From the sequence record OP999027.1: a DNA stretch of 10,026 nucleotides; one strand, given 5' to 3'. Below the pieces are notes generated by a model, which was given only the letters and a program-made list of their open reading frames with translations, ran no database searches and was not told the origin of the DNA. Shown here piece by piece: positions 1-9,509 of this stretch (positions are counted from its first letter, which is position 1; the number at the start of each line of letters is the position of its first letter). A program made the translations under genes and the position numbers.

Positions 1-246
1 CTGGCAAGGCCCAGAGAAAAGGCTGGAAACCTAGAATTCTAAAATGCAAGAAATGTGGCTTTACGCATGATAGGGACGTTATAGCAGCGTGGAATATTGC
101 TAAAAAATTAGATGTGAGCCTCATGCCCTGGGGCTCAAAGGGGGCCCATGACCCTTACGTGGAGTGGTCAGTGTCCATGATGAACCGTAAGGTTGAGGCC
201 CAACACCCCCTCCTAACTATGGGGTGACAAGGAAGATTGGGTTCAT
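1..246 (+). mobile_element. Right end of an IS200/IS605-family element
   Basis: tnpB 3' end; subterminal hairpin CACCCC(204-209)/GGGGTG(221-226); candidate terminus GGTTCAT at 240-246. The segment is visibly GC-richer (27/60 in 1-60, 36/60 in 121-180) than the flank. The exact last base is inferred. Confidence 0.8.
3..227 (+). CDS. tnpB: C-terminal fragment of IS200/IS605-family TnpB (RNA-guided nuclease), 5'-truncated by the window edge
   Basis: Frame 3, not in the ORF track, translates GKAQRKGWKPRILKCKKCGFTHDRDVIAAWNIAKKLDVSLMPWGSKGAHDPYVEWSVSMMNRKVEAQHPLLTMG*. CxxCG followed by DRDxxAAxNI is the TnpB zinc-ribbon end plus RuvC-III motif. TGA at 225-227. Confidence 0.92.
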   Translation, partial: GKAQRKGWKPRILKCKKCGFTHDRDVIAAWNIAKKLDVSLMPWGSKGAHDPYVEWSVSMMNRKVEAQHPLLTMG

Positions 247-1252: not shown

Positions 1253-2062
1253 CTATGTAGCGAACAGATAATTTTCAGTCTTTGAGGCCGGTGCTGCAAG
1301 CCGCAGAGCCAATTCATCCTTATGCTTTATAGCGAAGATTTTAGACTTTCCGCTGCGTATCTGATCTTGATATGTTTTGCTCAATTCTTCTGCATAACTC
1401 TTTAACACAGCTTCTATATCATTATTATAATCAGCCAGGCTAACTTTCTTTTCCTCAAAAAACCAATTATTGCTTCCTAACATACCAGCAGCAACTAAGT
1501 CCATTTTCGTATCTGCATAAAATACGTCAGCTTCGATAAACGTATCATTACCGTCTATAGGTATAGTGTATCTTTTTAGCTTCTTCATCGCCGTATTTAT
1601 CATATTCATCTTAACCTCCTTATCATGCTCAACATAAGCCAAAGGATCATAGGTAAAGCCAGCTCTTTCGATAAAGTCATTGAAGACATAAATTAGTGGG
1701 GATAAGCCAGACATTATTATTATCAATAGCCTATCTTTAGCCGCATCTAGGTCAAACAAATACTCGCTGTTATGATCGACATTTATTTCAAAAATGAAAG
1801 TGAACATTATTTTTAGTTTTTCTTTGTTGGCAGTGTTATATAGTCTAACACTTAGGTTTATCGCATATGTTGTTTGATTAATCTTTGATATATCTTTCTT
1901 TATGCTAGCTATTTTATAGTTGTACAAGGCGAAAGGCAATAGGCCTTTCTTATATAGCGCGAGACTGTTTCTTAACACGTAGTGTACAAGATCTTCTAAA
2001 GTCTTTTCTTTTACCTTTAAGTGGAGTTGTGTTTTTTCGGGTTCGGATTGGATCTCAAACAT
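1253..2062 (-). CDS. Hypothetical protein (269 aa) with a probable single N-terminal RHH and an unassigned alpha/beta C-terminal region
   Basis: ATG with GGCGGT RBS downstream of a TATA box. QLHLKVKEKTLEDLVHYVLRNSLALYKKGLLPFALYNY aligns with RHH2 of the neighbouring protein (L..YV..N......L..F.AL..Y). Remainder not recognised. Confidence 0.75.
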   Translation of the reverse strand: MFEIQSEPEKTQLHLKVKEKTLEDLVHYVLRNSLALYKKGLLPFALYNYKIASIKKDISKINQTTYAINLSVRLYNTANKEKLKIMFTFIFEINVDHNSEYLFDLDAAKDRLLIIIMSGLSPLIYVFNDFIERAGFTYDPLAYVEHDKEVKMNMINTAMKKLKRYTIPIDGNDTFIEADVFYADTKMDLVAAGMLGSNNWFFEEKKVSLADYNNDIEAVLKSYAEELSKTYQDQIRSGKSKIFAIKHKDELALRLAAPASKTENYLFAT

Positions 2063-2233
2063 TTTACCGCCGATTATTACTGTAGTTATTTAAGCTTATA
2101 AAACTTTCTATCATGAGCTTCATAGCCAAATACGTAAAATTACGTGTTAACATAACAGTATAGTCACAAAAACATAAGGGGAAAAAGGGACTTCACCAAA
2201 ATTGTAGAACTGACATTACAATTCTGTAATTTT
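2060..2233 (-). promoter_or_regulatory. Intergenic cassette copy 1: oligo-T terminator, 36-bp inverted repeat, 14-bp palindrome, BRE/TATA, leader
   Basis: Minus strand GAAAG-TTTTATAAG (2095-2108) is a BRE+TATA. Perfect palindrome ACGTAA-AA-TTACGT 2132-2145; IR AAAATTGTAGAA-N12-TTCTGTAATTTT 2198-2233. About 80% identical by hand to 7197-7340. Confidence 0.8.
2178..2190 (-). terminator. Pyrimidine/oligo-T terminator candidate for the RHH operon ending at 2243
   Basis: Minus strand TCCCTTTTTCCCC about 55 nt after the stop codon; same relative position as the T7 tracts in cassette copies 2 and 3. Confidence 0.5.
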
Positions 2234-2242
2234 ACCAAAAAT

Positions 2243-3487
2243 TTACAAGAGTAGAATTTTAACATTATCTTTATCGATTTCCTTTAGGTAACCGTGATTC
2301 TTAAATGATTCGAACAACTCCGTTGTATTTCTGACAGATTTTATTTTCTTCATCGCGTCTTGGATATCTTGCTTCTTTACTACTGTTCCTTTTTTTAGCC
2401 CAGGATAAAGGCCCGTCTTTAAATCTTCCAAAATTCTTTGCCATACTACGTAAGTTTTAATATCAGACTTTCCAGAGAATCGTTTCTTTGTCCATTGTCT
2501 CAATATTTTTGCTATAATTTTGCCAACTTCAAGCTTAATCGCACTTTCATTAACGCTTAGCTTATAACCATGATGATACCTAAGTATGACATATTCTTTT
2601 AGCAAGTTATAAAGTCGTCCTGATAATGGTACACTGACAAAACGACTTGCACGTCTAGGTTTGGGTTTATTATTTTGTTTCGGTGGGTCATTAGGTGGGT
2701 CATTTGCTTCTTCATTTTGTATAACCTTCTGTTGTTCTGCAGTACTTCCATTCAGCAAATTCAAATGATTCATAATTGCGAGGCGAATAATAGCGCCTTT
2801 AGAAACTAGCGTCTGTTCCGAAATTTTTTCTAATTGTAGTAAAACGCGTATAGGCAACTTTATAGGGAGCTCTTTTTGAGGACCCTTTCCAGAAAATAAG
2901 TTGCTAGCAGTCTCGTGCAGCCTTTTGATTTCCTCAGAGTTATCATCATATTTTTTCAAAAACTCATCAATAGCCTCCCTTATAAGGTCACTTATTGTTA
3001 TGCGTTTTTTTATTACTTCATTCTCAAGGAGTTTGTGTAACTCGTTACTATACTTAAAGCTTGTCTGAACCAACACGTTAAGATCTCCGAAATCTGAAGC
3101 CTCTTGTAGTTTCGTTTTATGCCTTAGCTCATCCCTAGCTCTAGACAATATTTCTTTTACTTTTTCTATATAAGGCCTTTTCTGTCTATCATCAAGATTA
3201 AGGAAGTTATTTATCATGCTCCAAACTATTCTCATAATCGAAAATCCTCTTGAGTTGACATAAATGCGGATCTTCTCCATAGCATCTTCTGGTAATGTTA
3301 AAGAAATTCTTTTTAACTCTTCTTTATTATAATTGGGTGGTAGTGATTCTATAGAGTCTGAAGGATTTTCGGCAAATGCAATAATAGCCGCCCTCATCAA
3401 AAGCCCACCAGGTACACCAAGCCGTTCTGCCTCTTCTACTACTTTATCTAATAATGTTTCAGGAATGATGAAGGTCAGAGACTTCAT
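2243..3487 (-). CDS. Multi-RHH protein (four clear RHH, a possible fifth) with Pro-rich linker and C-terminal winged-helix-like domain (~414 aa)
   Basis: RHH units start at SLTFIIP, RISLTLP, QTSFKYS, ELPIKLP, and possibly FVSVPLS. The C-terminus KKQDIQDAMKKIKSVRNTTELFESFKNHGYLKEIDKDNVKIL has a helix-helix-beta-hairpin wHTH pattern. The first ~250 aa are collinear with the 270-aa neighbour. ATG 3487 preferred over GTG 3496. Confidence 0.85.
   Translation of the reverse strand: MKSLTFIIPETLLDKVVEEAERLGVPGGLLMRAAIIAFAENPSDSIESLPPNYNKEELKRISLTLPEDAMEKIRIYVNSRGFSIMRIVWSMINNFLNLDDRQKRPYIEKVKEILSRARDELRHKTKLQEASDFGDLNVLVQTSFKYSNELHKLLENEVIKKRITISDLIREAIDEFLKKYDDNSEEIKRLHETASNLFSGKGPQKELPIKLPIRVLLQLEKISEQTLVSKGAIIRLAIMNHLNLLNGSTAEQQKVIQNEEANDPPNDPPKQNNKPKPRRASRFVSVPLSGRLYNLLKEYVILRYHHGYKLSVNESAIKLEVGKIIAKILRQWTKKRFSGKSDIKTYVVWQRILEDLKTGLYPGLKKGTVVKKQDIQDAMKKIKSVRNTTELFESFKNHGYLKEIDKDNVKILLL
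2682..2704. repeat. 11-bp direct repeat (period 12) encoding NDPP-NDPP in the linker
   Basis: GGTGGGTCATT at 2682-2692 and 2694-2704. Confidence 0.8.
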
Positions 3488-3492
3488 TCTTA

Positions 3493-4305
3493 TCACGCTA
3501 CCAGTGTTGTGTTTGCTTTGCTAACACTTTGCATAACCTCTTGATGTACGTCAACCAAGTTCAGATATCTCACAATTGCAAGGCGAATGAGCATAGCCCT
3601 AGACACATTAATCTTATCAGCTATTTTAGTTAGCTGTAATAGCATATATGCAGGCACTTTTAAGGAACAATCCTTAGCCGAAACTTCGATATAATACAGA
3701 TGTTTAGCAGCCTCATATAGCTTTTCGATTTTCTCAAAGTTATTACCATATTTCTGCAAAAGATCATCAATAGCCCTTCTTACAAGTTCACTTGCCGTTA
3801 TTCCTCTTTCACGTACCTCTTTTGCAAGTAGTTTACGTAAGTCATCTAGACATCTAAAACTTATTGGAACCAGCCGATAAGGTTCTTTTGAAGCAATATT
3901 TTCCAGTAATTGAAGCGAATGCTCTTTGTCTCGTTTTCTCTTTCTCTTCTCTGTTATCTTTCTTACCTCTTTTTTGATATAGATTAGTTTTTGCTCATCA
4001 CTTAAATTAAGAAAATCGGCTACCGTCCTCTCCGCTACTTTTCTCGCCGGAAGGCCTTTTGCAGCAGCGTAAGAATAAATTTTTTCTAAAGTGTCTTTTT
4101 GCAATGCTAAACAAACTTTTGTTATTTCTTTTCGTCCAGACCCGCCGATTGCGTTTGGTAATGGTTTTATAGAGTCTGGCGGGTTTTCTGCAAACGTCTG
4201 AATTGCAGCACTCAGCAAAAGTGTTCGTTTTACATTAAAACGCGACGCTTCTTCATTTACCTTGTTAAGTAAAGAGATACGTATTGAAAAGCATAAATAT
4301 GCCAT
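3493..4305 (-). CDS. Four-RHH protein (~270 aa), paralog of the N-terminal part of the 414-aa protein
   Basis: RHH units at YLCFSIR, KVCLALQ, PISFRCL, CSLKVPA. Motifs shared with the neighbour include FAENP.DSI..LP, FLNL.D.QK..YI, LLQL.KI and IRLAI...LNL. ATG 4305 follows GGGTGA RBS (track start GTG 4314). Confidence 0.87.
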   Translation of the reverse strand: MAYLCFSIRISLLNKVNEEASRFNVKRTLLLSAAIQTFAENPPDSIKPLPNAIGGSGRKEITKVCLALQKDTLEKIYSYAAAKGLPARKVAERTVADFLNLSDEQKLIYIKKEVRKITEKRKRKRDKEHSLQLLENIASKEPYRLVPISFRCLDDLRKLLAKEVRERGITASELVRRAIDDLLQKYGNNFEKIEKLYEAAKHLYYIEVSAKDCSLKVPAYMLLQLTKIADKINVSRAMLIRLAIVRYLNLVDVHQEVMQSVSKANTTLVA

Positions 4306-4316
4306 TTTTATCACCC

Positions 4317-4637
4317 TTACACTAGCTTGAAATAGGCTGCTAATGCAGTCCGTATGAGGTCGCTCTTATTCGTTCTTATTTTTTCTGCTACAATATCTAG
4401 CTGAGTGTTGAGACTCTCAGGAAGCCTTATGGAAATTACGTACTTACCTGAATAGGGAGAAGTCTTTTTGCTTAACTCCATTATCTCATCATTATTATGC
4501 TGTAAAAGCCTCATCACTGCCTCCTTTATAATTGCGGTTTTTGTGGTGTTAGTTTTTTCAGCCTCTTCCTTTAGCTTTAAAATAAGGCTAGATGCACACT
4601 TGAAGCTTATCTGTTTTAAGGGTTCTTTCTCTAACAT
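4317..4637 (-). CDS. Two-RHH protein (106 aa), CopG/Arc-like single-chain tandem RHH
   Basis: KQISFKCASSLILKLKEEAEKTNTTKTAIIKEAVMRLL and YVISIRLPESLNTQLDIVAEKIRTNKSDLIRTALAAYF are both textbook RHH patterns. ATG 4637 with GGTGGT RBS (track start GTG 4655 lies in the leader). Confidence 0.9.
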   Translation of the reverse strand: MLEKEPLKQISFKCASSLILKLKEEAEKTNTTKTAIIKEAVMRLLQHNNDEIMELSKKTSPYSGKYVISIRLPESLNTQLDIVAEKIRTNKSDLIRTALAAYFKLV

Positions 4638-4790
4638 TTTACCACCAATTAACACTGTAGTTTTTCTAGATTAAAAAACTATCTATCATGAGTTACATAA
4701 AGAAAACCGTAAAATCTTGTGATATTATGAAACGATGATCACGTAAAATGATTGTTAAAAAAAGGAATTTGCCAAAATTGGTGAATTCTG
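4635..4790 (-). promoter_or_regulatory. Intergenic cassette copy 2 (distal inverted repeat truncated by the upstream gene end)
   Basis: TTAAAAAACTATCTATCATGA at 4671-4691 is identical to 7202-7222. CGTAAAAT, GAAACGAT, A7-GG (4757-4765) and CCAAAATTG are collinear with the other copies. Leader 4635-4662 matches 2060-2087 at 24/28. Confidence 0.75.
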
Positions 4791-4791
4791 T

Positions 4792-5364
4792 CTAGTTATT
4801 CATATTATCATTAATTTTCATTATAATATTCGCTATCGTTTTAAAGGCTAATTTGCCATAAGGATAAAGTTCGATTTGAATGTTTTTAGAAGCCTCATAA
4901 ACTATCTTGTAATGGTGTTTAGGCAAAACCGCAACTATTCTTTTATGGATATTGTGGGCATGAGAGAGTGCAATGGAAAGTAGTTTGATGAACTCTTGTT
5001 TTTCTTCTTCAGTCATCAAAGAAGGAGGATAATCATAAGAATTGAAAGGGTAACAGTTCTCTAATTCTCTAGGGACTAACAACATCGGCTCAGAGACAGA
5101 ATACACTTGAACCTTATCCTCAAGTTTATACTTTCGTAGCAAGGAATAAGCTAGTTTGTGTGTGGCTGACTTATTATAAGGCTTAACTGATGTACAAGGT
5201 AATAAAAGCGCTATTTCTTTTTTGGAATACCAGTTGTTGAGAAAGTACTCATGCCATTTTTTTACCACAGGATGTTGGAATGGGTCAAAGCCAGGCTTTT
5301 TTATTATTTTTTCGCCTGAGCCAAGATACTTCTCTAAGGGTTCACAGCCTTCTACATAACTCAT
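4792..5364 (-). CDS. Stand-alone ArcS-like catalytic domain (DUF5591-type; archaeosine synthase C1 region), no PUA domain
   Basis: PCTSVKPYNKSATH (aa 56-69, nt 5158-5199) matches the ArcS signature PCx3KPYx2Sx2H exactly; followed by VSEPMLLVPRELE..YP...YDYP, typical of this domain. Only 190 aa. Confidence 0.85.
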   Translation of the reverse strand: MSYVEGCEPLEKYLGSGEKIIKKPGFDPFQHPVVKKWHEYFLNNWYSKKEIALLLPCTSVKPYNKSATHKLAYSLLRKYKLEDKVQVYSVSEPMLLVPRELENCYPFNSYDYPPSLMTEEEKQEFIKLLSIALSHAHNIHKRIVAVLPKHHYKIVYEASKNIQIELYPYGKLAFKTIANIIMKINDNMNN

Positions 5365-6205
5365 TTATTTCCGCCTCTGGGTCTGTTATATTATGAGAGT
5401 ACTTAATAAGAGGGTGATCTGCCTCATACTCACTATGTAGCAAGACCCATACATTAATAAATGATCTATCTATCCAATTGTCAAACCTTATAGGAAATGG
5501 GTAGTGAGTCTTCTCTAGAAAGTCCTTAAGTGATTCAAGTTCATCTTCACTAATTCTTCTAGCACCCCAACTTATTTTTCTCTCTCCAACATACCTTTCT
5601 CCTTTTCCAGGCAATAACACCATACCATGTATTGCCTTTACTCTATAAGTTGATGTGTCAACACTATCAGCATCATAAAAAACCTTTCTCATGAAAGGAG
5701 AACCAGCACCTAAAACGTGAATTTTACCCTTCCATTCTTTTCTAACAAGGCGATACATCGCAACTGCTAGCTTTTGACTGGCTACCTTATTAAGAGATGG
5801 TGGAACTATCCCACCAAATGCGATATAATCCGTATATTGAGAGTAGAAATCAATAGCCTTTTTAATGCTTTCAACATCATAAGCGTGAATGACTGGTATT
5901 ATATTCTTATCCAGTTTCGTGTATAAGTACTCAAAATGCTTGAAATTAAGCTCTGAAGGCTTTTCGCAAGGTGTTGCAGGTATATCGAGACTAATGTAAT
6001 AGTCTGCATCAAGCCTCTTGTATTTATCTAATACGGCATCTACACTAATCTGCATTTTTTTAACCATTATTTGATAGCCACCAGAATCTACCCACGTTTC
6101 ATTTTCCCATTCTACAAAGTCCCACACAAGCTGATTAATCATCAGTGGTACACCTAACTCCCATAACTTCACCCTACTATCAGGCAAACCTAAAATAATC
6201 TTCAT
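5342..6205 (-). CDS. tRNA-guanine transglycosylase-fold protein, DpdA-like (candidate DNA 7-deazaguanine transglycosylase)
   Basis: TGT motifs DSGGYQ, SLDIP, PVIH, FGG, HVLGAGSP and DSVDTST, with both catalytic Asp positions present. No CxCxxC zinc site and no PUA domain; His where tRNA TGTs have QG. ATG 6205 preferred; the track start GTG 6247 overlaps the upstream gene. Confidence 0.85.
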   Translation of the reverse strand: MKIILGLPDSRVKLWELGVPLMINQLVWDFVEWENETWVDSGGYQIMVKKMQISVDAVLDKYKRLDADYYISLDIPATPCEKPSELNFKHFEYLYTKLDKNIIPVIHAYDVESIKKAIDFYSQYTDYIAFGGIVPPSLNKVASQKLAVAMYRLVRKEWKGKIHVLGAGSPFMRKVFYDADSVDTSTYRVKAIHGMVLLPGKGERYVGERKISWGARRISEDELESLKDFLEKTHYPFPIRFDNWIDRSFINVWVLLHSEYEADHPLIKYSHNITDPEAEINELCRRL

Positions 6206-6224
6206 ATCCTTACCATTTTTCTCC

Positions 6225-6677
6225 CTATATGTTAAATACCATTTCACGTATGGTTTTGATTGTATTTCTTACAAATCTCGCCTTCTTCATCGTCAGTGGG
6301 GTCTGATTCAGTTTTAGCTGAAGATGCTGAATAAAGTAGAACATCAAGATTCTGTGAGCCTTTTTTGCCCTTTCATTTTCGTATTCCGGAACGACGTAAA
6401 CTACATTCAAGGCGAGTACATCTCTCCAGCTTTCTATGTGAACATACATCTGCAGAACTTCCTGGAGATGAATGAGATATTCCTGAATTTTCGTATTATC
6501 TTCTAATGTTCTCAAGATTTTTGCTAACATGTAGATGATCTCGTCCAATGTTGCATTCTCTGGATTCTCAATACCAAGCTCTTGCAAAAATTGGAGGCCT
6601 TCTTGATCTTGCGCCACTTCTTCCTTTATGCTCTCCCACGATTCGTTACTTAACCCCTCCGGAACGATATTTATCAT
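6225..6677 (-). CDS. Hypothetical all-alpha protein (150 aa), tandem paralog of 6693-7163
   Basis: Roughly half of residues identical to the neighbour by hand alignment (e.g. YVVP.Y..ERAKKAH..LMFY.IQ.LQ). Both are preceded by GG-rich RBS + AAAAAC-ATG-ATA. Confidence 0.85.
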   Translation of the reverse strand: MINIVPEGLSNESWESIKEEVAQDQEGLQFLQELGIENPENATLDEIIYMLAKILRTLEDNTKIQEYLIHLQEVLQMYVHIESWRDVLALNVVYVVPEYENERAKKAHRILMFYFIQHLQLKLNQTPLTMKKARFVRNTIKTIREMVFNI

Positions 6678-6692
6678 GTTTTTCTTACCCCC

Positions 6693-7163
6693 CTATCTAT
6701 TCTGCGTATTAAATATCATTTCACGCAAGCTTTCAATAAATTTATCTATAAACTCCATTTTTTCAGTAAATAATCCAGGTCCTTTTATAGGTTGTTGTAA
6801 GTACTGAATCAAGTAAAACATTAGTAACTTGTGTGCTTTTTTTGCTCTCTCGTCCTTATAGTCAGGTACGACGTAAATCATAGCCAACACATTATCCTCA
6901 TTCTGCCAATCCTCATTGAATTCTGAAACATACGTCTGTAATGATGCTTTCAATTGTATTATATATTTTGTTTTAGCTTCATCACTTTCTAAGGTATTTA
7001 ATAACTTCGCTATCATACGAACTATTTCATATCTTGTTGCCTCTGCAGGGTCCTCAAGACCTAGTTCTCTCAAATATTGTATAGCTTCTTTATCTTGTGC
7101 AACATTTTTCTTTATATATTCCCAGCTTATTTTACTTATTCCTTCTGGCACAATATCTATCAT
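6693..7163 (-). CDS. Hypothetical all-alpha protein (156 aa), first gene of the TGT/ArcS operon
   Basis: ATG with GGAGGTGG RBS directly downstream of cassette copy 3; paralogous to 6225-6677. Confidence 0.87.
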   Translation of the reverse strand: MIDIVPEGISKISWEYIKKNVAQDKEAIQYLRELGLEDPAEATRYEIVRMIAKLLNTLESDEAKTKYIIQLKASLQTYVSEFNEDWQNEDNVLAMIYVVPDYKDERAKKAHKLLMFYLIQYLQQPIKGPGLFTEKMEFIDKFIESLREMIFNTQNR

Positions 7164-7196
7164 GTTTTTCCCACCTCCATTTATCTTTTCTCTTTT

Positions 7197-7340
7197 TTAG
7201 CTTAAAAAACTATCTATCATGAACTCCATAGTCAAAAACGTAAAATTATGTGTTAACACGAAACGATAGTCAAAAAACTTGAGAGGAAAAAAAGGGGCTT
7301 CTCCAAAATTGTAGAACTATCATGACAATTCTACAAATTT
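7197..7340 (-). promoter_or_regulatory. Intergenic cassette copy 3
   Basis: 54/62 identity of 7197-7258 to 2091-2152 and 36/43 of 7298-7340 to 2191-2233. IR AAAATTGTAGAA(7305-7316)-N12-TTCTACAAATTT(7329-7340); near-palindrome ACGTAAAATTATGT 7238-7251; T7 tract (A7 on + at 7287-7293). Confidence 0.82.
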
Positions 7341-7377
7341 GCTACCATCACGAATTTTTCTCGTACTAATGAGATTT

Positions 7378-7392
7378 AAAAAAAGGGAAAAA
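7378..7392 (-). terminator. Oligo-T terminator candidate for the thyX operon
   Basis: Minus strand TTTTTCCCTTTTTTT about 70 nt after the thyX stop. Confidence 0.5.
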
Positions 7393-7401
7393 TTTAGCGA
7401 T

Positions 7402-7441
7402 AAAAGTTCGAAGTTCCTGTATATAGCAAAAGTTCGAAGTT
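7402..7441. repeat. Perfect 14-bp direct repeat AAAAGTTCGAAGTT (period 26)
   Basis: Copies at 7402-7415 and 7428-7441, separated by CCTGTATATAGC. Confidence 0.85.
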
Positions 7442-7462
7442 TGAAAATAAGCTTTCATCACT

Positions 7463-8239
7463 TCAAATCGAGTCAATAACACCACGTGAATTAATGACGC
7501 ATTTTATAATTCCATCCCTATTAACTCCTTCAATACATCTTTGAGATATAAACTCTATATTGTGATTTTTAAGTACATCATCTAAAGTTATATACTCATT
7601 TCTTATGAAATTCTCGTGTATTATGCAATTTGGCCCAGCATATCTAAATAATCTTGGGTGAACTTTCTTTACTTCCTCTAACATTCTCCACGCAATTGCT
7701 CTAATTTCCCATTGAGCTCTTGAACAGAGCCTTAGGGAAAAGAAATTATATAATTCCCTAGCATTCATACTTACTACGATGTTTGTATTAACAGCGTTTG
7801 GCAAAACATAACGCGCATCCTCTTCGGGTATTCCGCTCTTCAACAATTCATAATAAATTTCATAAGCATTATTGTAAGCTTTGTTAACTAGCTCATGAAC
7901 ATCCCTCTTTTTAATGCTAATAGGTATTATTGGCTTATAATATTCATCTATTGGCCTAGCAAACCTATGAGACATTTGCGTATAAGAGGCTATTCTATGC
8001 CTAACAAGCTGATGAGACGCAACCCTAGAAATTCCCTCAATAGAAAAAGTATAAACTGAATGCTCTAACACAGACCAATACCCATGTAGAATTGCATCCC
8101 TAATCCATGTCTCAATCTCGTCATCACTCATTTCTTTTTCATGATAATCCCAACCTTTCCTACTCCTACTCATTTTAGCCGCAATCGCTACTACCTTTTC
8201 ACCATCAGGTGAATATGATACTAGTCTGACTATCATCAC
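7463..8239 (-). CDS. thyX: Flavin-dependent thymidylate synthase ThyX
   Basis: ThyX motif RHRxxSxxxxSxR ([13 protein letters not shown]), plus SVLEH, ARYVLP and [12 protein letters not shown]. Start GTG 8239 or ATG 8236. Confidence 0.97.
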
Positions 8240-8249
8240 TTTCGCCTCT

Positions 8250-9260
8250 TCAAAACGTTATGTAAAACTCTGCGATTAAGTGTAAGGCCTCTTTAGCGTT
8301 CTTTAGGGCCTCATCAAGATGCTTTTGGAAATCGTCAAAACATAGCGTATACGTATCATTACATAGTACGTCGTAAAGTGCTTGTAATGCCTTAAAATCT
8401 GCATATGTCTCCATTAAGTTTATTATAGTTGCGTCAAAATCAACGTCTTCTGCATCTATTCTTTGCTCCTCCTCGTTCCAGGCTTTTTTTGATAACACTA
8501 ATCCAGCCGGATTAGCAGGAGTGATTGCTAGATTATAATACTCCCACATATTGTCAATAGCTTCGCTTAGCACATTATAAGTTCCCCTAGTAATATCCTC
8601 ATTCGCCTCAAGCATCGCGGTAATCGTATCTATGTCCCTCTCAAGATGCTCATGTCTATTTTCTATCATGCCATAATACCTCGAAAGATACTTGTCTAAC
8701 TCTTCCACCAAGGCTTGCCTTTTATCTGGGCCAATATTGTTGTGCCTTGTGTAGTAATCTGAAATTGCAACAAGTATACCAAATGCTCTCAGCCTAAACA
8801 CATCTAAATCTCCTTTTAGAAAGAATGACTCTATATCTCTGTTTTGTTTTATAAGCAGATATAATGCCTCCATTGCCCTTAAATTTGCGTAAATTTCTAA
8901 AACATACATAAATGCATTTTTGGCATCGAATTTCTCTGCTACCATTATGCCTCTCTCCTTATCAAAAGCCTTATTAAAAACCGCACTTAGCATTGCGGCA
9001 TACTCCCTCACCTCATCATAGTAGACACCTTCTAAAATGCTAAACGTTAACTCTATTGCGCTTTGCGCGCTTTTCGAAGTAAACTTTTTTTTCTCAATCT
9101 CTTTCCAAACATATTTAAGACTTAATTCTATGTTAAAAACTGTCTCTTGTGTTTCCCCATAATAAACCTTAAACTCCATTAGATCTTTAATACTCTGTTG
9201 TATTTTTGAAATAAGTTCTACCTTATCATTTGCCCCTCTAGGGTTTATAAGTTCGGCCAT
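8250..9260 (-). CDS. Hypothetical alpha-helical protein (~336 aa) made of two diverged ~162-aa repeats
   Basis: Long ORF; ATG 9260 follows GGTGA RBS (track start GTG 9275). YYG, KA, E.YA and ALY recur at an offset of 162 aa. Confidence 0.85.
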
Positions 9261-9380
9261 TTTTGTATTCACCAATTTAACTATTGTTCTTTATACTTAT
9301 AAATCTATTTCCTATGTTTTACGGTAATAACCCATAAAAACTATGGCATTTATTAGCATAGCCACTACCTAAAAAAAAGG
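9258..9380 (-). promoter_or_regulatory. Promoter of the 336-aa/thyX operon; possible degenerate fourth cassette copy
   Basis: TTTATAAG TATA (9296-9303), palindrome CCATA-N5-TATGG at 9331-9345, A8-GG at 9371-9380. Primary identity to the other copies is weak. Confidence 0.55.
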
Positions 9381-9509
9381 AACGTATTATGACTATAGAG
9401 TAGGATTTTTCTAAAAATATGTAGAAAAAGAAGCTAGCTTAAAGTAAAAGGTAAAAATGCTAGGATAGAATGCAGACTCACTTATTATTATCATTTGATC
9501 AAAAAGAAT

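Follow-up and report, generated by a model that had tools for sequence, protein, structure and literature searches.

A repeated modular cassette before three unrelated operons of the spindle-shaped virus STSV4, a candidate boundary element between transcription units

Why does one and the same sequence of roughly 180 bp stand in front of operons whose genes are unrelated to each other? The question is raised by OP999027.1, a contig of 10,026 bp from Sulfolobus tengchongensis spindle-shaped virus 4 (STSV4), whose genome is incomplete and divided over 11 contigs (PMC10101205). The stretch of DNA analyzed here, the window, is identical to this contig, and where its gene order is shared with STSV1 and STSV2, its identity to them is about 80-87%. 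All real genes of the window lie on the minus strand, to which the coordinates below refer unless stated otherwise. The repeated sequence, hereafter the cassette, precedes the genes for a 269-aa protein (copy 1), a 106-aa ribbon-helix-helix (RHH) protein (copy 2) and a 156-aa protein (copy 3). It has a modular anatomy and no RNA structure, it is conserved at orthologous sites of related viruses, and rearrangements and conversion have taken place at it. We consider it reasonably probable that the copies are composite elements that mark the boundaries between transcription units and are read at the DNA level.

Three collinear copies are recovered both by a repeat search (families D1, D3 and D6) and by a MAFFT alignment, in which the aligned part begins about 180 nt before the start codons and runs up to them. 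Start codon included, they span 2060-2239, 4635-4791 and 7161-7346. An earlier note on this DNA had located the copies correctly but left out the stretch between TATA box and ATG as well as the outer arm of the palindrome. Its estimate of about 80% identity between copies 1 and 3 holds (114 of 144 aligned columns, or 79.2%, over the spans it had given), and the exact 21-mer that it reported for copies 2 and 3 is indeed present (TTAAAAAACTATCTATCATGA, at 4671 and 7202). The note was also right to call the operons unrelated, since the gene families behind the three copies show no relationship to one another. The nhmmer E-values of the copies (1e-34 to 1e-50) exclude a chance resemblance, and the core pattern of the palindrome occurs at two sites in the window versus 0.08 expected from window shuffles.

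Relatives were searched as the earlier note had suggested, using nhmmer with a profile of three and then of twelve copies over STSV1, STSV2 and the STSV3 contigs, and the genes downstream of each copy were listed. Full-length copies lie upstream of STSV1 ORF17, ORF20 and ORF25, of STSV2_12, _17, _22 and _24 and of two STSV3 genes (E = 1e-27 to 1e-50), and a weak copy is located upstream of STSV1 ORF72. Four metagenome-assembled STSV-like contigs (L013, L017-L019), which were reached via homologs of the 269-aa protein, contribute eight more. In total, 20 full-length copies are known from STSV1, 2, 3 and 4 and these four contigs. Every one of them ends at a start codon, and the same small set of three or four locations on the gene map is used throughout, with three to four copies per genome. 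In these 20 copies, from at least eight genomes or contigs, the sequence is conserved as far as about 140 nt upstream of the TATA box, which is, as the earlier note had claimed, far beyond a basal promoter. A pattern scan of IMG/VR returned STSV1 and STSV2 only, pattern scans of JGI metagenomes and GTDB genomes did not find the cassette, and a genome scan with the 18-nt core of the palindrome gave, among the matches listed, only scattered bacterial chance matches.

The modules of the cassette follow each other in a fixed order: a palindrome (P), a C-flanked T-tract, a mid block, a B recognition element with TATA box (BRE/TATA), a leader with Shine-Dalgarno (SD) motif and the ATG. P is a dyad-symmetric element of about 48 bp with consensus TTCT-N-CAAATTT-RYMR-AATTGTCA for one half and TGACAATT-YKRY-AAATTTG-N-AGAA for the other. 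Four AATT-centered subsites, spaced by 9, 12 and 9 bp, can be read off a perfect STSV1 copy, and the dyad positions are conserved. In copy 1, P occupies 2192-2239 (dyad center 2216/2215, 15 of 28 positions symmetric, nhmmer E = 4e-9) around the core GAATTGTAATGTCAGTTC at 2207-2224, beginning about 20 nt past the stop codon of a gene for a 414-aa RHH protein. In copy 3, it occupies 7299-7346 (dyad center 7323/7322, 17 of 28 positions symmetric) with core GAATTGTCATGATAGTTC at 7314-7331. The palindromes of the earlier note are therefore present, with the correction that copy 2 holds the right half of P only (4767-4791, starting with ACAGAATTCACCAATTTTGG), the left half being replaced by the 3' end of a 190-aa gene with its stop codon at 4792-4794. 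The oligo-T tract, which the same note had seen in each copy, is a putative terminator or insulator of the form CCCC-T5-8-CCCC that is invariant in the 20-copy alignment: T5 in copy 1 (CCTTTTTC, 2181-2188) and T7 in copies 2 (CCTTTTTTTA, 4756-4765) and 3 (CCTTTTTTTC, 7286-7295).

The mid block measures about 80 nt and is almost free of indels, and its profile matches full-length cassettes only; it covers 2110-2180 (E = 4e-20), 4685-4755 (E = 3e-11) and 7216-7285 (E = 1e-17). Its best-kept motif, ATTTTACGT, lies at a fixed 23 nt upstream of the BRE. Copies 1 and 3 share TGTTAACAC (2144-2152 and 7250-7258), and ATTTTACG is found at 2133-2140 in copy 1, at 4708-4715 and a second time at 4742-4749 in copy 2, and at 7239-7246 in copy 3. 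The conserved TCATGA block takes the form TCATGATAGA in each copy (2107-2116, 4682-4691 and 7213-7222). The BRE/TATA, likewise present in each copy as reported and described by AGAWAGTTTTWTAA, reads AGAAAGTTTTATAA in copy 1 (2096-2109) and AGATAGTTTTTTAA in copies 2 (4671-4684) and 3 (7202-7215), with AGAAAGTTTTATAAGCTTAAA as consensus over the cassettes. This AGAWAG + TTTTWTAA element is situated 34-48 nt upstream of the ATG in copies 1 and 2 and 39-53 nt upstream in copy 3, with the SD motif in between. It has the A/T-rich TATA box, the purine-rich BRE and the position ahead of the gene that allow for an archaeal transcription start site (TSS), and at homologous sites in STSV1 the depositors annotated a TATA_box (18719-18724 and 20755-20761) and also a ribosome binding site. 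Applying the usual TATA-to-TSS spacing of 26-27 nt, the TSS of copy 1 is predicted near 2072-2076. The leader counts about 10-13 nt and its SD motif is GGTGG. The initiation region of copy 1 (2060-2095) contains GGCGG at 2067-2071 and the ATG of the 269-aa gene at 2060-2062; that of copy 2 (4635-4670) contains GGTGG at 4642-4646 and the ATG of the 106-aa gene at 4635-4637, while that of copy 3 (7161-7201) contains GGAGG at 7174-7178 and the ATG of the 156-aa gene at 7161-7163, its leader being 5 nt longer than those of the other copies. Behind copy 2, the gene starts at ATG 4637, as annotated (106 aa), and not at the upstream in-frame GTG 4655.

A palindrome followed by a T-tract calls to mind a hairpin-type terminator, or an element that stabilizes or processes RNA 3' ends, in which case the idea of an operator would be wrong. 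In the cassettes, P indeed follows a stop codon with the T5-8 tract within about 15-20 nt, and its self-complementary consensus makes an RNA hairpin possible. Yet P also leads a life outside the cassette. Its profile matches about eight stand-alone intergenic sites per genome, divergent promoter regions included; in a phage collection searched with BLAST it is confined to STSV-type viruses and occupies 12 places in STSV1. In STSV1 (AJ783769.1), stand-alone P elements at 30943, 41908, 48508, 53863, 66598, 68665 and 73154 mark most transcription-unit boundaries of the remaining genome, and positions 68665-68712 form a perfect 48-bp palindrome flanked by two divergent TATA boxes. Three of the stand-alone sites, at 41927 (ORF37/38), 68688 (ORF66/67) and 73173 (ORF71/72), are located between divergent TATA boxes, where there is nothing to terminate. 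Next to most stand-alone P elements the T5 tract is absent, and all copies upstream of ORF20 or its orthologs (u20) lack half of P while keeping the T-tract. Moreover, termination in Sulfolobus is known to need only a T-tract, which also counts against a hairpin. A comparison over 21 P instances, in which own arms were set against arms paired across non-orthologous instances, points the same way: complementarity within instances (179) does not exceed that between them (173.5 +/- 7.0, p = 0.24). What is conserved is therefore the dyad sequence and not a hairpin with compensatory changes, and we regard the hairpin explanation as unlikely.

Alternatively, the conserved block could be transcribed as a small non-coding RNA or encode a micro-protein. 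Short open reading frames (ORFs) are annotated across the cassettes in GenBank (2164-2265 on the minus strand; 4468-4674, 6916-7200 and 7339-7479 on the plus strand), and the nearly symmetric TATA box makes divergent initiation conceivable. These short ORFs are unconserved between copies, however, and are probably not genes, while indels of 1-2 nt within and behind the T-tract shift the frame from copy to copy, which excludes a conserved reading frame. RNAalifold found no consensus structure over 12 copies (-2.98 kcal/mol, with a covariation term of -0.05), and Rfam returned no family at E-values up to 1, only a single chance match. A structured cis-regulatory or small RNA was rejected on these grounds, having no structure, no covariation and no Rfam family, and a non-coding RNA or micro-protein in general seems to us highly improbable. 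The signals of the cassette are best taken as DNA-level signals, of which the symmetric sequence is what one would expect for a protein-binding site.

From the sequences we infer the following division of labor for a composite boundary element. P would serve as operator for a virus-encoded DNA-binding protein that is dimeric or built in tandem, and the C-flanked T5-8 tract would halt or insulate transcription arriving from the upstream operon. The mid block with its rigid spacing may be an upstream regulatory site specific to the regulon of the cassette, after which the BRE/TATA and the short GGTGG leader would start the downstream operon. Three unrelated operons would thereby share one mode of control and be co-regulated: that of the ORF17 family together with the TGT-like and ArcS-like genes, that of the RHH-repeat regulators, and that of the ORF25 and ORF26 homologs. 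Like copies would in addition double as sites of homologous exchange, owing to their very likeness. The trans-acting factors would most likely be the RHH-repeat proteins themselves, because the gene for the twin-RHH 106-aa protein (4317-4637) comes first behind one of the cassettes, which would result in an autoregulated regulon as in the SvtR, AvtR and F55 systems.

The 106-aa protein is matched by Pfam RHH_1 in two stretches (E = 8.6e-10) and by phrog_876, a transcriptional repressor (E = 1.5e-22); an iterated profile places its RHH motifs at residues 9-47 and 67-105. Three further RHH-repeat genes occur in the window, for proteins of 270 aa (3493-4305) and 414 aa (2243-3487), which follow the 106-aa gene in this order, and for a 352-aa protein (259-1317) downstream of the 269-aa gene. 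These paralogs probably have four motifs each, a figure obtained partly by eye. Pfam alone undercounts the motifs, whereas the iterated profile detects two strong ones per protein plus weaker N-terminal ones. The 352-aa protein adds a charged tail that is probably a coiled coil; its start as annotated, which creates a 65-nt overlap with the 269-aa gene, is probably placed too far upstream.

Archaeal viruses offer precedents in the RHH regulators SvtR of SIRV1, AvtR of AFV6 and F55 of SSV1 (reviewed in PMC5569661). AvtR, in which one chain holds both RHH motifs, is a monomer when bound to DNA, has eight sites in the genome and acts as repressor of its own gene (PMC5569661). The 106-aa protein of STSV4 shares the two motifs per chain, and autorepression is typical of RHH proteins. 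In the gp30 promoter, the site of SvtR is situated about 80 nt before the TATA box, toward which the protein is thought to spread (PMC5569661), and P of STSV4 similarly lies about 110 nt upstream of its TATA box. P also has the layout of RHH operator subsites, with inverted or tandem repeats about one helical turn apart. The early promoters of SSV1 contain ATAGATAG repeats at their BRE or TSS, and these are bound by F55 (PMC5569661). In the window, ATAGATAG occurs four times (4679-4686, 5466-5473, 6693-6700 and 7210-7217), on the coding strand only, versus 0.6 expected, and none of 200 shuffles reaches four. Three of the four sites lie just upstream of gene starts: two abut the BRE of copies 2 and 3, where the upstream flank of the BRE/TATA yields the string, and one is found 16 nt upstream of the gene for a 150-aa protein. 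On the other hand, a sequence comparison detects no similarity between the STSV proteins and the RHH regulators of solved structure, the STSV proteins carry two to probably four motifs per chain, and the consensus of P, the putative operator, is unlike the published SvtR and AvtR consensus sites. A comparison with the aCcr1 box was dropped, as its consensus in the literature is not strict enough for scoring.

A more far-reaching proposal, which we put forward tentatively and consider rather doubtful, joins the P elements (about a dozen per genome) and the STSV proteins with two to four RHH motifs into one virus-wide switch. The four AATT subsites of P, which are in phase, would be recognized by RHH pseudo-dimers that are joined covalently into chains. 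From a distance of 40-115 nt upstream, these chains would determine when most transcription units are active, with the family-B cassette (the three-copy type) as the core of an autoregulated circuit.

A number of observations weigh against the composite boundary element as outlined above. RHH autoregulation is its leading candidate mechanism, in which the putative link between the RHH proteins and P is drawn from proximity and analogy; copy 2, the very one that drives the RHH genes, is without half of P. The ATAGATAG string counts only 8 nt and is derived in two STSV4 copies, the others having ATAGAAAG. A separate T7 tract at 7377-7386, nearer to the thyX stop codon, already lies upstream of P of copy 3, so that the T-tract of cassette 3 itself is not needed to terminate thyX. 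Finally, in the comparison of STSV4 with STSV1 the flanking genes are better conserved than the cassettes: identity is 93-100% for thyX, 72-82% for cassette 3, 77-100% for the TGT-like and ArcS-like genes and 60-70% for cassette 2, and four-fold degenerate sites of the flanking genes are 79-89% identical. Strong constraint would consequently act on only a part of each cassette, and gene conversion could inflate the similarity between paralogous copies. The cassettes are hence not ultra-conserved; discrete blocks persist, and the remainder turns over quickly.

The same data bear on the view that the copies are mere relics of duplication, homogenized by gene conversion, of which the basal promoter alone is functional and which resemble each other through descent and intragenomic exchange. 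Besides the faster divergence of cassettes compared to flanking genes, this is favored by the behavior of copies 2 and 3, which group with each other in a tree of all 20 copies (support 92/89). Both depart from the consensus of the other 18 copies at 21 columns versus 11 expected (p = 7e-5), and 16 of these 21 departures are identical (p = 7e-5). They have eight states in common that are found in no other copy, compared to three for the next best pair. This points to gene conversion between cassettes 2 and 3, which lie 2.5 kb apart, or to joint adaptation. Outside STSV4, however, copies group by position and not by genome, as in the u20 clade of the other viruses (94/94), so that conversion is only occasional. 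Furthermore, relics would not be expected to retain invariant blocks and a nearly indel-free mid block in 20 copies from at least eight genomes, nor to share the spacing from TTTACG to the BRE with a distantly related cassette family, which is discussed below. Taken together, we deem it improbable that only relics are present.

Does the cassette also shape the gene content around it, as the earlier note proposed by analogy with T4-type phages? T4-like phages possess composite terminator/promoter cassettes known as promoter-early stem-loops (PeSLs; Arbiol et al. 2010, PMC2839356; Comeau et al. 2014, PMC4122927). In both systems, short units of a terminator and a promoter are repeated between the genes of a variable region. 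Indels or replacements between close relatives start or stop at the PeSLs, and a few cases suggest the same for the cassette; for STSV4, the order of terminator and then promoter is apparent at the sequence level only. Several such differences are visible. After thyX, STSV2 keeps P and the T-tract, but neither mid block nor promoter nor a gene of the ORF17 family follows, with the break directly after the T-tract. At this same boundary, L013 has an extra ORF17-family paralog (188 aa), followed by half a P, the T-tract, the mid block and the promoter, and the few bases that remain at the STSV2 break match the start of this 188-aa gene. The tandem array of paralogs of the 156-aa and 150-aa type, with a period of about 477-486 nt, numbers none in STSV2, one in STSV1 and two in STSV4 and L013. 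STSV2_12, the ortholog of the 341-aa gene of the window (87% identity from 15 nt inside the gene), carries the three-copy type of cassette, while STSV1, STSV4 and L013 carry another family there. STSV2 possesses two operons of RHH genes, and each of these comes with a cassette. Finally, the contig L014 (JAVZBB010000022.1) from a metagenome-assembled genome encodes the 156-aa protein in identical form and, behind it, the 150-aa, TGT-like and ArcS-like genes; its similarity ends in the last ArcS-like codons (L014 2380-2500), after which a family-A-type promoter (see below) and unrelated genes follow, including a PaREP1-like one. L014 could be a recombinant or an assembly chimera. Gene gain and loss, cassette swap and conversion thus bear out the recombination substrate of the earlier note in part: breakpoints at cassettes amount to four cases plus one conversion tract, which are few events with one contig possibly chimeric, and a PeSL-like role in recombination has moderate support from these comparisons. 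The two systems also differ in a number of respects. The STSV4 promoter is an archaeal BRE/TATA and that of PeSLs a bacterial sigma-70 early promoter; the STSV4 cassette is about 180 bp long with a large regulatory block and is present in three to four copies per genome at conserved positions; its palindrome also occurs alone, away from terminators, and the likeness is drawn here from sequences, excised circles not being part of it.

Gene-content differences that begin at the cassette, together with the one gene that swapped its cassette family, might also suggest a small mobile element, either similar to miniature inverted-repeat transposable elements or a self-moving PeSL-like unit, that spreads a promoter. 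TnpB-type insertion sequences do occur in these viruses (a fragment at window 3-227, and transposases in STSV2). Against mobility stand the stable number of three or four copies at orthologous positions in all relatives, the 3' end that is always a start codon, the lack of an inverted repeat joining the cassette ends in a repeat search of the window, and the presence of copies only in STSV-type sequences among the collections scanned. A mobile element is for these reasons very unlikely in our view.

Shared promoters lead to the question of when the regulon would be active, for which the earlier note suggested a probably early timing. Virus-specific early regulatory sequences have been derived for archaeal viruses by Bhoobalan-Chitty et al. 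2024 (PMC11065993), who list as putative anti-defense genes ORF1, 2, 4, 6, 9, 11 and 72 (plus 3, 5, 7, 10 and 55) of STSV1 and STSV2_01-04, 06, 08, 09 and 73 of STSV2. The supplementary lists of that study contain neither STSV1 ORF17, ORF20 or ORF25 nor STSV2_12, _17 or _24. The published early/anti-defense motif of STSV1 and STSV2, before ORF1-11 and ORF72, belongs to the other cassette family, termed family A here, a second long cassette located upstream of STSV1 ORF1-11 and ORF15, with 11 copies in STSV1 and seven in STSV2. The window holds both families, as a family-A copy lies upstream of the 341-aa gene (about 9258-9411; nhmmer with the family-A profile, E = 6.6e-10). The family-A profile matches copy 1 only weakly (E = 4e-5) and the L013 cassette at E = 4e-7; the spacing TTTACG-N23-AGAAAG is common to family A and the three-copy cassette, and the region upstream of STSV1 ORF72 is an intermediate form with a P element. 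By these matches, the three-copy cassette is to be regarded as a sister or distant relative of the published family A and not as family A itself. Due to this sister-family status, the designation 'early' cannot be carried over to it. Both regulons have in common a strong BRE/TATA within a long virus-specific sequence before several unrelated genes, and this distant homology with its shared spacing. They differ in their gene sets, in the P palindrome and C-flanked T-tract that the STSV4 cassette adds, and in the regulator, since the STSV4 regulon contains no Aca8-type regulator and has an RHH-repeat operon instead.

The nomination of the 156-aa and 269-aa genes as anti-defense genes fares no better, as their homologs ORF17 and ORF25 are missing from the published lists and neither their sequences nor their predicted folds match anything known. 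Searches of Pfam, NCBIfam, PHROGs, PADLOC and PDB sequences gave no function for either protein, nor was homology to known anti-CRISPR or defense proteins found. The AlphaFold model of the 156-aa protein is a seven-helix bundle (predicted local distance difference test score, pLDDT, of 81) whose sole Foldseek match is its homolog STSV1 ORF17; that of the 269-aa protein is alpha+beta (pLDDT 73.5), with no significant Foldseek match. A PADLOC match to CARF (16 bits, E = 0.0011) does not fit the all-helical model and was treated as chance. The family of the 156-aa and 150-aa proteins is confined to STSV-type viruses and predicted to be all-helical. A tie of the 156-aa or 269-aa protein to anti-defense is hence unsupported. 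Phages are known to carry 7-deazaguanine DNA modification. By analogy, the operon headed by the 156-aa gene might modify DNA through its TGT-like and ArcS-like products and so counter restriction; these two together with ThyX could form a nucleotide or DNA-modification module of the 7-deazaguanine type.

In order of transcription, the window encodes the 341-aa protein, ThyX, cassette 3, the 156-aa, 150-aa, TGT-like (287 aa) and ArcS-like DUF5591 (190 aa) proteins, then cassette 2, the 106-aa, 270-aa and 414-aa RHH proteins, and lastly cassette 1 with the 269-aa and 352-aa proteins. The operon behind copy 3 comprises four genes (4792-7163): the ORF17-family 156-aa gene (6693-7163), its 150-aa paralog (6225-6677), the TGT-like gene (5342-6205), which has a weak match to TgtA, and the ArcS-like gene (4792-5364). 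The TGT-like and ArcS-like genes (together 4792-6205) and thyX (7463-8236) are grouped and have 90-97% nucleotide identity with STSV1. Between the thyX stop codon and cassette 3, a direct repeat of 14 nt, AAAAGTTCGAAGTT, which holds the palindrome TTCGAA, occurs at 7401-7414 and 7427-7440; the pair is conserved in STSV1, STSV2 and L013. The 269-aa gene behind copy 1 (1253-2062) belongs to the STSV1 ORF25 family (phrog_28589, E = 1e-142). At the left end, the TnpB/Cas12f-like fragment on the plus strand is a C-terminus of 74 codons that runs off the window (Pfam PF07282, E = 1e-7). Homology to STSV1 ends beside it at window 233, about 13 nt inside the ORF27 homolog, which suggests that an insertion sequence was inserted there.

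What the locus amounts to, then, is a real, well-delimited and modular cassette that belongs to the known archaeal-virus regulons with shared regulatory sequences and has a PeSL-like evolutionary behavior. Its interest lies chiefly with archaeal virologists. STSV-type viruses would possess a second, separate regulon beside the published 'anti-defense' regulon, and the search for early or anti-defense genes should not simply be extended to every shared promoter. P, the ATTTTACGT block and the BRE-proximal ATAG repeats offer candidate DNA targets for the multi-RHH proteins, relevant to the question of virus and host transcription control raised in PMC9976892; if the virus-wide switch were true, specificity for long operators would be assembled from RHH modules in tandem, which would be a new design. 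Lastly, the cassette may be an archaeal parallel to the PeSLs of T4-like phages, where control regions present in several copies are also the points at which recombination shuffles genes.

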